From Vitrella brassicaformis CCMP3155 (taxonomy: Eukaryota > Protista > Chromerida): DNA of 64,000 nucleotides. A program made the position numbers and the translations under genes. Below the pieces are notes generated by a model. That model was not told the DNA's origin. It ran no database searches and saw only the letters and a list, made by a program, of their open reading frames with translations. Below are positions 29,104 to 45,510 of this stretch, piece after piece (within the stretch, counting starts at the first letter, position 1; the number at the start of each line of letters is the position of its first letter). The stretch lies in the NCBI GenBank assembly GCA_001179505.1, contig CDMY01000378.1, positions 30,403 to 94,402 of the forward strand, written 5' to 3'.

Positions 29104-30467
29104 CTACACGACAAACGTCGTGATTGCGCGGGAAATGACAGCCTCGTCCAGGTCGTATTTCCCCAAGAAGCACCTCACCCGCGGCATTGTCACGGGGAAC
29201 CGGGCGTTGAATGGTGCGGACTTGCCGGCAGCAGGCGGCTCGGTCGTGAACAGCTCGATACCGCCCATCCCCATCATCAGATACACAGCGATGGTGTCGG
29301 TGTCTCTAAAGCCGCTGCACCCATGGAAAGACAAGCAGCACACGGACAAGGAATGGTGGCACAATCAGTCAGCAGAGAGAGGGGATCAGTTCCCCAGTGT
29401 ACCTGATGGCGATGAATCGGTAGCTGGTCTGCAAACAGTTCAGCAGGGTGAGCTGTCCTGGCAGCTCCCCAGGCAGCGCGCCCCCCATGCAGCACTCCGC
29501 CACGATGCCGTCCTCCTCCCCAACGCCATCCCGCAGCAACCTGCGATACCGATTGTCGCCTCGCTCGATCGCCGCGTGTAGCACCCTCGTCTCGGTCACA
29601 CCCTCAGCCCTGAAACGGCCCAAACAAATGAGAGGAAGGCAGTCCAAGTGCCTCATTATGTATGCGTCAGTATTCTTGTCTCTCTCACTTGTTCCAGTGC
29701 TCAAAAATGTTGCGGACTATGAAGGCCGAATAGCTGGGATACAGCGCGACGCCCTCCTGGACGGCAGGGTCTTCCGCATTGAGGCAACGGCGGTAGGGAT
29801 GCTCTGGCGGCAGTTCATCCACCACGCGCACCATTTTGAAGCGTAACGCATCGCCGATCCGAAACGCACCGCTCGTTTGCCTGCGCAACGCCTGACACAC
29901 GCAAACAGAGAGAACACACCCAAAGCCCTGTATGTCGGCGTCGGTCGGTCTGTCTGTCTGTCTGCGCATCCATACCAGGTTGGTCCCCTGATAGTTGAGC
30001 TGGTGGCCGATGATCTTCTTGTAGATGGCCATGGCGAGGGGCAGCTCGATGAAGGACGCTTTGGTGGGCAGGTAGGTCAGCACGCGGGCCGCCGTCACAA
30101 GGATGGGCATCTGCTCAGGCGTCAAGCGGTAGATGCGCGCCAGTCTGAGCGCCTTGCCCATCGCTCTCCACTCACGTCGCCCCATCCCCAGCAAGCAGGC
30201 GCACCGCAGCAGATAGCTGAACCGGCTGATGCCCTTGGGCATGGCAGGATGCCCGGCGGTGCCCCTCCGTCGCTCCACATCAATGAGGCCGACGAGACCG
30301 TTGCGACCCAGTGCGCGGTCGATGCGATGAAGGATGACATCGGCCGTGACGACGAGACTGCCGCTCCGCGAGGTGGCGCGGACGGCGAGAAGGTCCAGTA
30401 GGGCCGGCTCGTGAACGATTAGAAGAATGCGATTCAACCAAATGTCACTACCCAGCACGTGCGCCAT
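29104..30467 (-). CDS. Lineage-specific hypothetical protein, multi-exon
   Basis: ORFs 29685-30467 and 29104-29364 plus an intervening exon join via GT-AG introns, ending ...FNARFPVTMPRVRCFLGKYDLDEAVISRAITTFVV-stop. No known domain recognised. Confidence 0.65.
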
Positions 30468-38679: not shown

Positions 38680-39359
38680 ACAGAGAGGGTGTGTGGGAGG
38701 CGCGGAGGTAGGGTGGTATTGTGTGCTGGTTGATGGAATGCTCATGCATGTCATTGACTGACTAGCTGGTCGGTGCAGCGTGTGTTAACTGATGGATGGA
38801 TGGATGAATGCCCCCTTTAGCATGCACGCCATGCATCAAGAAGGCAGCGAGGAGGCATTGCTCGGGCACCGCACGCAAGGCCGTCCATTCCATTCCTTCA
38901 TTGGCAAACCGAAACTCCATCCATCCGTCCAATGCCTGGTCTGTCATTCAGGCAGGGATGTCCATCAATTAACCTTCTCGCCAGACGCAAGCACAGACAC
39001 ATCGGCGGGCGGGCAAAATGGTCCTTATTAGCTGGAAGCACCCTTCTCTCTGTCTCGCTCACCATCGGTATATGACGCATCGACGCACTAAATCACCGGC
39101 CACTCACTCATGCCATGCACACAGCTGCACACACAGACACGAGAAAGAGGGGGCTGGCTCACTCAGTACACAGATGGCCTGTCACTTGAGCCCAAAAACG
39201 CCACACACATCACATCAGATGACACAACCCGGCCCACCCAGGCCAGGCAGGGGGCACGGCATATGCACATGGCAGGCAGACAGGCAGGGAATGCTGGCAA
39301 GCAGGTGGACAAATAGACCAGCTGCTCACCTCGGATCAATCTTGGCTGGCTGCCGTAGG

Positions 39360-42300
39360 CTAGGTGGTGTGCTGCACGTGGCTACCGTACTCATCCCTCC
39401 CTCCCTCGGCAACACCGCAGTACGTACGCACAGTGCAGTCAGTATAGTCTGTACGCATGGCATGCACTGCGCCGTCCGTGCAGTGTGTGTGTGTGTGTGT
39501 GTGGATCAGAACGGACTTGCCTGTCTCCTCGCCTTGCCCCCCCGCCCCGACCCCCATTTGCTCGGACTGCCTGGCGGATGCCCACTCGCCGATGTGTTGG
39601 CATCCGTGGCGATCTGCAGACCACCACCCACACCCCCCTGGCCCGACCCCGAACGCCCTTCGCCTATTCTCCCCCTGGACTTGTTGCTGCCGGGGCTTTC
39701 CCGCCGGCTGCCGGCCTCTGCAGCTGTGGAGGCCTGCTGGTGACTGCTGCTGATGGGGAGGGGGGCTGGCAGGGGCGCCTTTGCGGCCTTCTTGTCCTTC
39801 TCACGAGACAATTTGGCAGCAGGAGTGTAGAAGGCCATGCCACCTAACACCACACACACAGACAGAGACGGGGGGGGGAGGGGGGGAGGGACAGATGAGG
39901 TCAGCTGAGCTTGCCGGGTGTGACTTGACTTGGTGTGATGGGCTGTTTCGTTTCCCACCTGTTATGAATATGTTGTCTTTGTCGGACGTACTGACGGCCG
40001 TGTACTTGAGCCGATGACCCTCACGGTAAAAGACATAATGCTGGACAGACAGACAGACAGACACAGACAGGTGCAACGCGCTCTTCGTTGCCGCACATCA
40101 TGGCAGGTCAGGTAATACACACCTGGAGTATGAGCAGTATGTCGTAGGCCATAGACGCGCCACCGATCAGCATCTTGGGGATGTTCTCCAGGATGTAGTC
40201 GGCGTCACTGAATGCTATCGCATCGATGCAGTTCTGCAGCAGCGAAAAAATGCCTCCACTTATGTCCAGCAAGATCTGCTGGATCGCCATACCTATCCAA
40301 TCCACACACACACACACACACGTGGAGGTCGGCCAATGCAGCGATGGATAGGCTCACTCACCCTTGGTTGATTTGTTCCTGTAGTTCAAAAGGATCTGAG
40401 GAATATACTTGACTATCGTGATGAAGGCCTTCACCAAACCTGATTGATGATTTATCGACACACAGTGACATCCATGGTGTGGGTGTGTTGTTGGCCCCTC
40501 CATCCCTCCCTCCCTCCCCTCCCCCTTGCTCGGCTCGGCTCACCAAGATAGGAGACGACACTCCACCCCTGCAGGCTCCACAGAAGCGTCGACACCCCAG
40601 CCCCTCCCGATATAGAGCTCTCCACCGCACCAAGCTGCCGCCTCCTGTGGCCGTCGTCAGCTGCCAGGAAGCCATCCAGTGCCCTCCGCCAGTGCGTCGA
40701 GTCCCTCAACGACCCCTCAACATTGGCTGTGGCGGGCAGCGCGTGGTGGTGGTGGATGGTGTACCATGGGATGACCCCCATGCTGGCCATCCCCATCTGC
40801 ACTACCAGCAGCAGGATGAGAGCCCCTGAGAGGATCCGTGCGGGCCAGCCGATGGTCTGCCCGCCCTTCTCGTAGATGAGGATCTGGTAGCCGAGCACCG
40901 AGCAGATGAATAGGGCGTGCACCGAGAAGAAGACGTCGTGCAGCTCCACTGCAAAGGCCAGGTTGTGGCGGATCTGGATCACGTAGCGCACCACGGTGTA
41001 GGTGCTGTAGGCGGCGAACCCGACGATATTGAGCCAGGCCAAGTCAAAGGAGAAGCCGACACATGACTTCCTGGTGTAGTTGAGCCACACTTGGGGGTAG
41101 AAGGAGAAGGTCCAGCAGAAGACATAGATCACGCCGCACGCCGATGACAGGAACTCCAGAATCTGGAAGATCACGTGCTGCTCGTCCGCGGCTGCGAGTG
41201 GAGCCTCCTCCTGGTCCTCAATGAAGCTGTCGGCTGGCTTCCACTCCTCGTCTCTGCCCGCCCTGGCCATGTCCTTGACCATGTTGCCCCGCTTCCTGCC
41301 CTTGTTGGCACGCATGTCCTCCTGCCGGCTGACGTTGCGGTGGGTGGCGTTGGAGGTGCGGTTCGTGCCGCCGCTCCGCTGCTGCTGGTCGCCCTCAGTG
41401 ACCTCCATCTCATCTGGGTCGCTCTCCCTGTCCACCAAAGCACCCAGCGAGTCGCCCGCTGACGGGGTGTCGCAATCCGCACCGCTGGCGCTATCGCATT
41501 CGGACGGCGATGCAACCTGCCAAAGACAACCACCAGCCAAGAGATCCACATATCCATCGGAACAGCACTCGTTCGCTCAGTCGGTCTATCTATCGGCTCT
41601 CTGCCACCTCTCACTGACTGACCAGTGTGACGGGGTCGTCGGTGAGGAGTTCGTACATTTTGTCCCAGAGCTTGCCGGTGACGAGCAGCTTGTGTGTCCA
41701 GATGTTGTTCTTGAAGGCGATGCCGTTGAGGACGTCCCGCTTCCCGTTGCCGGCCGTGTTGCTCAGGTGCACCCCCTTCAGCCCCAGCTCCCCCAGGCAG
41801 TCGCCCGTCGTGGGGTCCACTCTGACGATGTACTCCTGGAACCACACGTTGGCGTACACGAACGGAGTCACGTACTCGATCTCATTGAGCTCTTCAGTCG
41901 GCACACCGTTGAAGCACGACACCTCCCGGGCCGCACGCACGTCGACAGACGAGGCGTCGGCCGGGATGCGCAGCTCCATGACGTAGGCTGACCCGTTGGT
42001 GGCGTAGAAGGTCCCCGGCTCCTCGGCGTCGTGTGCGTAGGCCAGGCCCCAGCCGTCGTAGGGATAGTCGAGCTCATTCAGCAGCTCCAGTGTGGTCAGG
42101 TTGTAGACGAGTATACGCTTCTCCCGCCAGGTGAGGACGAAGACGCGGCCGTTCCAGATGGCCGCCCCCTCGGCGAAGAACTTGTCGGGGATGTTGGTTT
42201 CCTTGAGGAGGGTCAGGTCGGGGTAGGTGTATTTCTTGATGCGCGACTTGCGGTAGAGGCCGCAAGTCTCAAGAACTGTCGTGTTGTCGATGAACAATAG

Positions 42301-42568
42301 ACCCTGCAGCGCAGCGCAGCAAGGACGGAAGGAAGGAAGGTTGACTCACAAAGGGCCAGTGAGGGACAGGCAAAGAGGGACGGAAGGCGCCACCTCAACA
42401 GTCATCGCATACGTACGTACGTACCTGTGTGAAGCACTCATGGTCGTGGTCCAGCACACGATTCACCTGATATGCCAAGTCACTCGGAGCGGCCACTGCT
42501 CCACTGCAGGCAAGGACGACCAAGACAACAGCTGTCCGCAAAAAGCGCCTCGCCATCACCGTCCTCAT
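39360..42568 (-). CDS. Fusion: signal peptide + plant/bacterial-type glutaminyl-peptide cyclotransferase + cystinosin (PQ-loop 7TM)
   Basis: QC: HDHECFTQGL, ETCGLY, FFAEG, LTWRE, GWGL, LNEIEY, ANVW, DVLNGIA, VTGKLW. Cystinosin: WTFSFYPQV, LNIVGF, HDVFFSVHA, VKYIPQ, LLDISGG, YDILLILQHY. Joined by a phase-0 intron at 41517-41622 (GTCAGT...GGCAG). The 3' tail is tentative. Confidence 0.85.
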
Positions 42569-42737
42569 CCGGTCGCAGCCTTCTTGCTGTGGCTTAGTCT
42601 TCATGCCCGTGTTGTCAAGGACGCGGCATCAAGCGAGATAGAGGACAGCCCTCTTTCAAGGTCTCTCGAGGCAAGAAGGTCTCTGGGGAGAGATGACCAA
42701 GCTCGAGGCGGCGAGAAGCCGTCTGCTTCCTGACCTT

Positions 42738-42752: not shown

Positions 42753-42904
42753 GTTAACGGCTGTGGTTCGCTATGCGTATGTGGAGGTTGCTTCTGTGAC
42801 ATGCGCACGAGGCATCGGAGGAGTGGGCTGTGAGGCTGCAGTGAATCACAGCCCAGATCATCGTGGTTGATTGACTTATCTCTCTTCCCTCTGTGTGTTT
42901 GGCC

Positions 42905-45510
42905 ATGCCGAACACTCAGAGCTCATCGGGGAGCAGCTGGGAGGTGCCTGCCAGGCCAGTGCCTGAGGACCTCAAGCAGCTGCACAAGCTTTATGGCGAC
43001 TCGGCCTTCGGCAAGACGCTCGCCAAGTGGGCCAAGGAGATGCCTGACGCGCGTGCCATCACCTGGCTGGACCGCAACAAGGACGAGCGGCTGCAGGAGA
43101 GCAAGACCTTCACATACCGGGAGCTCTTGAGGGAGGTGCAGCGGCTGGGTGCCTATCTGACTGACGAGCTGGGACTCGAGCTGGGTGATCGGGTGATCCT
43201 GTGCTACCCGCCCGGCGCCGACTTCAACATCGCCTTCCTCGCCTGCCTCTACACGGGCATCGTTGCAGTGCCCGTCATCCCCCCTGACCCCAGCAAGCTC
43301 AAGGTCGATGTGCCACGGTTGTGTGACATCGCCGAGAGCAGTGAGGCACGCCATGCGCTCACCAACGCCTACTACTCAAGGATCAAGATGGCCTTCGCCG
43401 TGCGCGCCCTGTCGGTGGACACCCGGTGGAGATCCATTGAGTGGCAGGTCCCCGCCAAAGTGATCGAGCACAAGAAGGGCGACGACACAGAGGCCGAGGC
43501 CACCCCCCCATCGATTGGCCTGAGCGACATCGCCTTCCTGCAGTTCACGTCGGGGTCCACATCGACGCCGAAGGGCGTGATGGTGACGCACGGCTCGCTG
43601 CTGCACAACGTCCACTGCTGCATCACGGCCTACGGCTGGGACAGCAAGCTCGACGACCCCACCATCCCCAACATCACAGCGACGGGGCAGCCCTACACCA
43701 GGACGCGCGACATCCTGTTGCAGCGGTCAGAGGTCAGCCAGCGGGTGCGGGGGCACCGCTTGAGGTGCTTCTCATGGCTCCCCGTCTACCACGACATGGG
43801 GCTCATCGGGTTCCTGTGCACGCCCCTCTTCTTTGGATGCGAAATTTTTCAAATGTCACCTCTGGAGTTCATCAAGACGCCGCATCTGTGGCTGCAAGGT
43901 ACGTACGCTGAAGGATCCTCATGCATCAATCCAATCAATCCATTCATTCATTCATTGGTGCGGTGCCTGCCTGTCTGCCTACCTGACCTGCGTGCATCTT
44001 GGTCTGCTCAGGCATGAGTCGATTCAAGGCTGATGCGTGTGCGGCGCCCAACTTCGCCTTTGAGCTGGTGGTGCGCAAGATGCCCGAGGACGTGTTCGAG
44101 GAGCTGGACCTCAGTCACGTGGCGGGCTTCCTCTGCGGAGCAGAGCCAATCAGGGCGGCCACCGTAGACAAATTCGTCAAGGTACTCACGGGCGTGTTTG
44201 AAGAGGGAGGGCGGCGGGCAATCAATGCATGGATCGACCAACAAAAGAGAACACGATGGCTGTCTGTGTCTGTGTTGTTTGTTTATTCACCATCATCAGA
44301 AATTCGCGAGCAAGGGTGTGACTCCCAGCAAGTTTCTGCCGGCATTTGGGTTGGCCGAGAACACCCTGTTTGTGTCGGGCCGCAAAGACATCGACAGCGA
44401 GCCTCTCATCATCACCGTCAACGCAATGAAACTCAGGAGCCAAGTGAGCCAACACAAGCAAACAACACACAAGCAAGCAATCAATCAATCAATCAGTGCT
44501 GCGAGGAAGCAGACAGACAGACAGACAGACATGCATCATCAGCACGGCACGGCGGGCATTTGCAAGCCACACACGTTCGTCTGTCTGTCTGTGGTGTTGC
44601 GTCTTGTGTGTGCAGGGTGTGGTTGAGTTGGTGGATGGAGCCGACATGGATGGCGAGCACGAGGGGGAGTACCAGCGGCTCGTCGGATGTGGCGTACCCT
44701 TCTCTGGCATTGACGGTACGCAAACCATCACTGAGGTCGCTCATCAGAGATTCATCGGTTTGCTTTGTCCTCTGTCATTCATTGCTGCAGTCCGTATTGT
44801 TGATCCCGAGACGATGAAGGAGCTGCCAGAGGGCCACTGTGGCGAGGTGTGGATGATGTCAGGCAGCACGGCTCGTGGCTACTTCAACCAGCCAGAGAAG
44901 ACGCAGGAGTCGTTCAATGGGCAGTGCATCTACCTGACAGGCGACAAGTCGGAGCCCTTGTACCTGCGCACAGGCGACAAGGGCTTCATCTACAAGGGGG
45001 AGCTGTTCATCGCCGGCCGCATCAAAGACATGATCATCGTCTACGGCCGCAACTACTTCCCGCAGGACATCGAGGAGGCCGCCGAGAGGTGCGAGGCGGT
45101 CCGCGGGGGAGGCGTCGCGGCCTTCTCGCTGGAGGTGGATGACCACGAGCGGCTGGGCCTGGCCGTGGAGATCAAGGAGACCAAGGAGGAGAAAGGCATG
45201 TGGGGATGGCTGTCGCGGCTGGGGCAGGGGGACGCCGGCAAGCAGCAGTACAAGGAGCTGAGCCGCGAGATATGCAAGGCCGTCTCGGGCAAGATCGGCC
45301 TGGCCGTCTACCGCATTTGGCTAGTCAAACCAAAAACCATAAGCAAGCACAAGACAAGTTCGGGTGAGGGGATGCGCTGCACACACTCACACGTACACAA
45401 AGGCGTGCCCGTCAAATTGATTCGTGCACTCCTTCTCCCCCTTTCCCTGTCTGTGTGGTCAGGCAAGGTGCGTCGTTTCAAGGTGCGTGACCTTCTTCTC
45501 AAGAAGGAGC
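42905..45510 (+). other. PKS loading domain: fatty acyl-AMP ligase (FAAL)
   Basis: DRVILCYPPG.DF..AFLACLYTG.VAVP; FLQFTSGSTSTPKGV; SWLPVYHDMGLIG; APNFAFEL; FGLAENT; YLRTGDKGF; GRIKDMII; KTSSGKVRR. Confidence 0.93.

Follow-up and report, generated by a model that had tools for sequence, protein, structure and literature searches.

The locus considered here raises a simple question: are a glutaminyl cyclase (QC) frame and a cystinosin-type transporter frame, lying one directly after the other on the minus strand, two genes or the two parts of a single protein? The window, i.e. the whole stretch of DNA that was analysed, comprises 64,000 nucleotides (nt) of contig CDMY01000378.1 of Vitrella brassicaformis CCMP3155 (positions 30,403 to 94,402), and all positions given below without a contig are those of the window. 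The original prediction, made from the sequence, had proposed that the QC frame passes in phase 0 through a 106-nt intron into a cystinosin with seven transmembrane (TM) segments. Sequence and the transcript contigs of four public runs agree with this proposal. The locus is one gene giving one mRNA, and its product is most probably a single polytopic membrane protein with a length of 833 amino acids (aa). The reading that we prefer, at a probability of about 0.72, is that of a bifunctional fusion, in which the same protein carries a tethered luminal QC and a cystinosin-type transporter.

One gene and one mRNA

In exon 1 the frame encodes a hydrophobic signal sequence and ends with ..ECFTQ, after which a GT stands at position 42424. 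Exon 2 opens with GLLFIDN.. after the AG at 42304 and is 227 codons long; its last residues are ..DDPVTL, at 41623, and GTCAGT comes next. Left unspliced, this frame ends after VSQ, at a stop codon (41611-41613) that lies inside intron 2, and exon 3 begins in phase 0 at 41516 (VASPSEC...). Removal of intron 2 deletes the QC stop codon, and therefore the last QC codon is joined in frame to the linker and the cystinosin part.

A search of public sequencing runs found eight that contain the stretch, and transcript contigs from four of them, belonging to three studies, were compared with the gene model. The RNA junction check across 41517-41622, left to be made by the original prediction, gave the in-frame splice in 4/4 of these runs, the 106-nt intron being skipped in intron-free contigs of each. 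The joint reads CT..AC on the plus strand and is therefore GT..AG on the strand of the gene. The remaining five introns were spliced exactly as modelled. In one run a single contig of 3252 nt spans all seven exons and both untranslated regions (UTRs), and in a second run two contigs together cover the gene. Several runs contain about 0.7 of the sampled words, which is the exonic share of the stretch. Retention of intron 2 was not found among the contigs of the four runs, the bin depths over the intron being those expected if only exons are covered.

These data bear directly on the possibility that the two parts are made from separate transcripts, through a retained intron with its stop at 41611 or from an internal start near 41400, the joined contigs being read-through. 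The linker does hold an in-frame ATG (..DEMEVTEG..), contigs cannot show transcript ends and some runs contain intronic words, but the same in-frame GT..AG joint in every run compared, with no intron-retaining contig, is difficult to reconcile with two genes. In addition, the orthologues described below are single open reading frames (ORFs) in Chromera and in a Colpodella transcriptome, and a paralogue in the Vitrella genome holds the join inside one exon. We consider two separate genes extremely unlikely; a minor unspliced form of the fused transcript may exist.

An exhaustive HMMER search with exon 2 matched, at 100% identity, an 833-aa protein of V. brassicaformis CCMP3155 (CEM07827.1, UniProt A0A0G4F621) that is labelled only "unnamed protein product / Uncharacterized protein". 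The RNA-supported model equals CEM07827.1 from residue 13 onward, and the C-terminus encoded by exon 7 is identical in the two. The public model starts at 42604, and in-frame alternative ATGs are present at 42568 and 42556; counted from 42568, the coding sequence is 2466 nt long. As for the span 39360-42568 first given to the gene, its upper end is an in-frame ATG, with the public start lying upstream, but its lower end falls within the 3' UTR (Table 1).

Table 1. Parts of the fused gene in the window and two related genes on other contigs of the Vitrella genome.
Feature	Position	Strand	Content	Support
Coding sequence, 7 exons	39506-42604	minus	833 codons from ATG 42604; 833 aa	
5' UTR	42605-42700	minus		42424-42700 and 29 nt beyond it in one RNA contig
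Upstream ORF, 4 codons	ATG 42629-42627, TGA 42617-42615	minus	ATG CCG CGT CCT TGA	Read from sequence
Exon 1	42425-42604	minus	Start codon, signal peptide, first QC residues with CFTQ motif (papaya F22, Q24)	
Intron 1	42304-42424	minus	121 nt, GT..AG	Joint in all four runs
Exon 2	41623-42303	minus	QC beta-propeller domain, 227 aa	PF05096, PDB matches
Intron 2	41517-41622	minus	106 nt, GT..AG, ends ..GGCAG	Joint in four runs, three studies
Exon 3	40544-41516	minus	114-aa acidic linker, TM1-TM4 with first PQ-loop, long TM4-TM5 loop, start of TM5	
Intron 3	40440-40543	minus	104 nt	Joint in all four runs
Exon 4	40362-40439	minus	TM5 and second PQ-loop (equivalents of K273, K280, Y281, P283-Q284, N288)	
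Intron 4	40293-40361	minus	69 nt	Contig pieces 40123-40290 and 40360-40437 contiguous in two contigs
Exon 5	40123-40292	minus	TM6-TM7 (equivalents of D305, K335, D346)	Cystinosin alignments
Intron 5	40041-40122	minus	82 nt	Contig pieces in three contigs
Exon 6	39959-40040	minus	End of TM7, cytosolic tail with YTAV motif	
Intron 6	39844-39958	minus	115 nt	Joint in all four runs
Exon 7, coding part	39506-39843	minus	Low-complexity cytosolic C-terminal tail, stop TGA 39506-39508	
3' UTR	39300-39505	minus		RNA contig extends about 419 nt past 39300
Paralogue, second fused gene	Contig C986, locus L006:655-3254	minus		
Stand-alone QC gene	Contig C780, locus L002:1489-3010	minus	Four exons, 410 aa (model)	

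Some features of the surrounding DNA were also observed. The short upstream ORF sits within the RNA-supported 5' UTR, 10 nt ahead of the annotated start codon. Microsatellites of the (CA)n/(GT)n and GACA types are present in the introns and the 3' UTR of the gene (39472-39512, 40293-40331 and 40037-40074); they were treated as repeats and skipped in transcript mapping. A divergent neighbour on the plus strand (42893-44017), which by eye resembles an AMP-dependent synthetase/ligase, starts about 290 nt upstream of the start codon of the fusion gene.

Conservation of the architecture and of its two domains

The search with exon 2 gave 4816 matches, and the best 150 QC representatives were checked for a cystinosin part. 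Besides CEM07827.1, two of these 150 also carry it: Cvel_17682 of Chromera velia (816 aa) and the complete 692-aa ORF of transcript GDKJ01014260 of Colpodella angusta, both with PF05096 and two PQ-loops. The combination of QC with PQ-loop, for which the original prediction had suggested a domain-architecture search across alveolates, is thus present in two more genera, and the Vitrella, Chromera and Colpodella species all belong to the NCBI clade Colpodellida within Alveolata. Full-text literature searches by domain names, accessions and species found no description of a QC-cystinosin fusion. In this respect the claim that no such fusion had been described is borne out, but the architecture was already in the databases as an unnamed model. 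Since this model and the Chromera and Colpodella orthologues exist, the architecture is undescribed rather than unseen. Among the best 150 of the 4816 QC matches, the join is so far confined to three chrompodellids, and it is unnamed in databases.

Word-index protein searches with the full protein and with the alignment of the three orthologues returned only QC-only or cystinosin-only proteins; because the known Chromera and Colpodella orthologues were missed as well, these blanks are uninformative on distribution. When the orthologue alignment was used to scan metagenomes, 19 loci were found, every one of them QC-only and with no cystinosin match nearby, and in the ESM Atlas no large cluster holding both domains was found. 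The closest stand-alone relative is a metagenome fragment with 44% identity, which might continue into cystinosin exons. This is a real and conserved new domain architecture, made from two known families, whose function we infer from them.

The QC part was identified with PF05096 (Glu_cyclase_2), which matched the full protein with an E-value of 2.5e-53 (181.5 bits against a cut-off of 22.3) over profile positions 19-247 of 249, and exon 2 alone with 2.3e-47. In the PDB, exon 2 matched 3NOL (2e-26), 3MBR (3e-25) and 2FAW (1e-21), and the full-length sequence alignments to these solved propellers, with E-values from 1e-21 to 2e-26, point to a five-bladed propeller fold. Comparison of the ESM Atlas model of the protein with QC clusters gave TM-scores of 0.72-0.79, as measured on a cluster member. 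The active site of papaya QC is formed by F22, Q24, F67, E69, W83, W110, N155, W169 and K225 (PMC9436314). HMMER alignment to 2FAW places F58, Q60, F103, E105, W119, W145, N200, W214 and K271 of the Vitrella protein at these positions, 9/9 being identical; F58 and Q60 are encoded in exon 1 and the other seven residues in exon 2. The opinion that the QC motifs look functional, formed at first sight from a few of them, therefore agrees with the complete set. The nine residues are invariant in the three orthologues, except that W145 (papaya W110) is Tyr in Colpodella, and the enzymatically active Plasmodium falciparum enzyme, PfQC, also has Tyr at this position (PMC9436314). Identity among the orthologous QC domains is only about 33-45%, and the retention of the active site in spite of it indicates purifying selection on catalysis.

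The membrane part contains two PQ-loop stretches (PF04193), with an E-value of 5.7e-33 for the full protein, 2e-16 for exon 3 and 4e-09 for exon 4. Exon 3 matched human cystinosin 8DYP with an E-value of 6e-21, N166 and D205 being conserved; exon 4 aligns to residues 272-294 of 8DKE, and exon 5 to residues 299-352 of human cystinosin and to Arabidopsis 7ZK1. Human cystinosin and the Arabidopsis homologue were the only PDB matches of exon 3 (E-value limit 0.001) and of exon 5 (limit 1), and cystinosins were the top matches of exon 4, with SemiSWEETs appearing only at an E-value of 0.65. All the transporter residues named in the original prediction are in place by these alignments: K273, K280, D305, D205, K335, D346 and N166 correspond to K615, K622, D647, D481, K677, D688 and N450, respectively. 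The roles of these residues in cystine binding, proton coupling and gating are described by Loebel et al. (2022, PMC9385667), who found five of them, K273, K280, D305, D205 and K335, to be essential to the human transporter. The equivalents of N166, D205, K273, K280, Y281, N288, D305, K335 and D346 are invariant in the three orthologues; human N301 is Gln in the Vitrella protein. An insert of about 55 aa with respect to human cystinosin was also observed in the predicted luminal TM4-TM5 loop (window 40700-40770, minus strand; residues about 540-600); it opens with HHHH in Vitrella, and it is long also in Chromera and short in Colpodella.

A simple hydropathy scan showed an N-terminal, signal-like hydrophobic segment in all three orthologues (residues 21-39 in Vitrella). 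In the Vitrella protein it gave seven more hydrophobic stretches, which correspond in position to TM1-7 of human cystinosin. The human protein aligns only from residue 123 onward, and it follows that QC and linker stand where that protein has its luminal N-domain. The topology described as coherent in the original prediction is recovered in this way. In the human protein, the Km for cystine stays the same when the luminal N-domain is deleted, and the Arabidopsis homologue is without this domain (Loebel et al. 2022, PMC9385667). The YTAV sequence, proposed as a tyrosine motif resembling GYDQL, does follow TM7 and fits the YxxPhi pattern; its conservation is another matter, as set out below.

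Between the two domains lies a linker of 114 aa that is acidic, polar and of low complexity and carries three N-x-S/T sequons in Vitrella. Its length, polarity and low complexity, together with its poorly conserved sequence and length among the three orthologues and a basic cluster, GRKRG, in the Vitrella protein, would suit a precursor: a single chain cut in the linker by a luminal protease, in which the trafficking of cystinosin does no more than bring a soluble QC to the endolysosomal or vacuolar lumen, each part then acting by itself. Proteases are, moreover, abundant where a cystinosin is expected to reside. This is the main rival of the tethered reading, although an unlikely one: the three orthologues have no cleavage motif in common, the sequons suggest glycan shielding, and in the paralogue a propeller without catalysis has stayed attached, which is hard to square with a role in enzyme delivery only.

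Related genes in the Vitrella genome

A six-frame search of the assembly found no stand-alone cystinosin and gave two cystinosin-type loci, the window gene and the paralogue on C986; other PQ-loop loci are present in the genome, none of them matching the cystinosin part. The paralogue encodes a signal peptide, an N-domain of about 320 aa and a cystinosin that is 45% identical to that of the window gene over TM1-4. Its N-domain and TM1-4 lie within one uninterrupted exon, and therefore the join is genomic in this gene and needs no splice. This result is independent support for the genomic reality of the fusion. The intron positions ..YLG|LVKA.. and ..ST.G|MAIQ.. are common to the two genes, as expected for duplicates of a gene that was already fused.

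The N-domain of the paralogue appears to be QC-like on the basis of two profile comparisons. It matches PF05096 with 26.2 bits and an E-value of 6.5e-6, above the curated cut-off, and hhalign aligns it with the QC family profile from end to end (probability 80.5%, E-value 1.3e-5, 219 columns). A phmmer search of this domain against the PDB found nothing relevant, and a single-sequence AlphaFold model of it was of no use (predicted local distance difference test score, pLDDT, 37.8). The positions of papaya F22, F67, E69, W83, N155, W169 and K225 are all substituted, and because of these seven substitutions the domain looks catalytically dead. In its cystinosin part, the equivalent of D346 is Cys.

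A quick maximum-likelihood tree of QC domains, built with no apicomplexan QCs among its sequences, grouped the three fused domains in one clade of 11 (support 90 in the Shimodaira-Hasegawa-like approximate likelihood ratio test, SH-aLRT), the other members being protist-like secreted QCs; whether the fused domains are each other's closest kin is unsettled in this tree. The stand-alone Vitrella QC of contig C780 falls outside the clade of fused domains. It has an N-terminal hydrophobic and basic extension and an insert of about 45 aa in the propeller. Within the clade, the QC domain of the Chromera fusion has as its sister Cvel_27435 (SH-aLRT 96), a QC-only model of 420 aa, also from Chromera, with a signal peptide and an acidic tail at its C-terminus. 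Cvel_27435 may have arisen by duplication and loss of the transporter, or its gene model may be truncated.

The state of these genes invites the idea that the propeller is mainly a protease-resistant luminal domain, engaged in protection, gating or partner binding, for which cyclase activity is irrelevant or absent. In fact, both cystinosin-type genes of Vitrella carry a QC-type N-domain, one of them catalytically degenerate, the separate intact QC gene is available for general QC needs, and the human N-domain is dispensable for kinetics (PMC9385667), so that the position tolerates unrelated folds. A purely structural role nevertheless seems very unlikely to us in view of the active site, which is kept 9/9 in Vitrella and Chromera and 8/9 in Colpodella, where the change is the W to Y of the active PfQC.

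A proposed tethered cyclase: mechanism and comparison with known systems

In the preferred reading, that of a bifunctional and tethered protein, the topology suggests that the N-terminus, led by a cleavable signal peptide, enters the lumen of the endoplasmic reticulum. The five-bladed QC propeller would then stand in the lumen, tethered to TM1 by the flexible acidic linker of about 114 aa, which is probably N-glycosylated, and the C-terminal tail would be cytosolic. The QC would thus stand where animal cystinosin has its glycosylated luminal N-domain, which is dispensable for transport and absent in plants. By family knowledge, the membrane part would move cystine and H+ together out of an acidic compartment, endolysosomal or vacuolar. 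In the same compartment, the tethered QC may turn the N-terminal Gln (or Glu, at acid pH) of luminal or transiting proteins and peptides into pyroglutamate, for example at a new N-terminus left by cleavage of a pro-protein. The transporter would anchor the enzyme in the membrane and act as its address label, and the compact, protease-resistant propeller may at the same time serve as a luminal cap for the transporter.

Several points weigh against this reading. The contigs are blind to transcript ends and to rare isoforms, and three further runs contain nearly all sampled words, including intronic ones, so that they may be DNA or intron-retaining RNA. The location in an endolysosome or vacuole is inferred throughout, by analogy with cystinosins; the YTAV motif is weak evidence for sorting, because the Chromera and Colpodella orthologues have no tyrosine motif at that place. 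The paralogue has lost most of the QC residues, which means that a propeller can persist at the N-position without catalysis, and the C780 gene is a separate, intact QC with its catalytic motifs kept and its own stop codon. The linker may be cleaved, or either part may be without function. Finally, pyroglutamate formation and cystine export are not known to be linked biochemically.

A wider reading can be formulated, in which the QC propeller is a standard luminal module of all chrompodellid cystinosins and works with the transporter, and in which an anchored QC of this kind was ancestral to the apicomplexan QC, which arose by loss of the transporter. The propeller might then capture or process luminal substrates with N-terminal Gln or Glu, or regulate the luminal gate. 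We regard this as quite improbable; if it were true, the immune-evasion QC of Plasmodium would derive from an endolysosome-anchored enzyme.

As for the fusion itself, its conservation in three genera may be taken as a "Rosetta stone" hint linking pyroglutamate formation with the cystinosin compartment, in the closest free-living relatives of the apicomplexan parasites. It predicts the acidic endolysosomal lumen as a site for QC of this type. The endolysosomal system is what apicomplexans rebuilt into secretory organelles, and the Plasmodium QC shapes evasion of mosquito immunity. The luminal N-position of cystinosin would be an evolutionary docking site able to take a whole enzyme, and the catalytically degenerate paralogue would provide a natural control. 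The value of the finding lies in a new architecture and in a better annotation of two "uncharacterized" proteins; it solves no long-standing question.

Among known systems, the QC of Plasmodium (PfQC, PF3D7_1446900, and PbQC) helps the parasite to evade mosquito immunity (Kolli et al. 2022, PMC9436314), as the original prediction correctly stated, and is a stand-alone enzyme with an N-terminal TM anchor. It resembles the Vitrella QC in being a five-bladed propeller of plant/bacterial type from an alveolate, membrane-tethered and with a conserved catalytic site. It differs in its size (352-384 aa), in having its single N-terminal TM anchor as the only membrane part, with no transporter, and in the three active-site Trp residues, all kept in Vitrella and replaced by Y/Y/F in Plasmodium. 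Papaya QC (2FAW/2IWA) and the bacterial enzymes 3NOL, 3MBR and 3NOK belong to the same PF05096 family, and the nine active-site residues align identically; however, these are soluble, secreted or periplasmic single-domain proteins, whereas the Vitrella QC is the N-terminal module of a 7-TM protein. Human isoQC (QPCTL) is a Golgi-anchored QC, held in the lumen of the secretory pathway by a membrane anchor. The membrane-anchored, luminal position of the cyclase would be common to the two proteins, but isoQC belongs to another family, with an unrelated zinc-dependent, aminopeptidase-like fold and a single-pass type II anchor.

With human cystinosin (CTNS; 8DKE, 8DYP) the Vitrella protein shares the seven TM segments, the two PQ-loops, the conserved residues and, as predicted, the luminal N-terminus. 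The human N-domain (residues about 23-120) is replaced in Vitrella by QC and linker, the GYDQL motif is absent, YTAV being found in Vitrella only, and a long TM4-TM5 insert and a long low-complexity C-terminal tail are added. For the segments encoded by exons 4 and 5, no PDB entry matches better than the Arabidopsis homologue (7ZK1), in which the same binding and gating residues are present.

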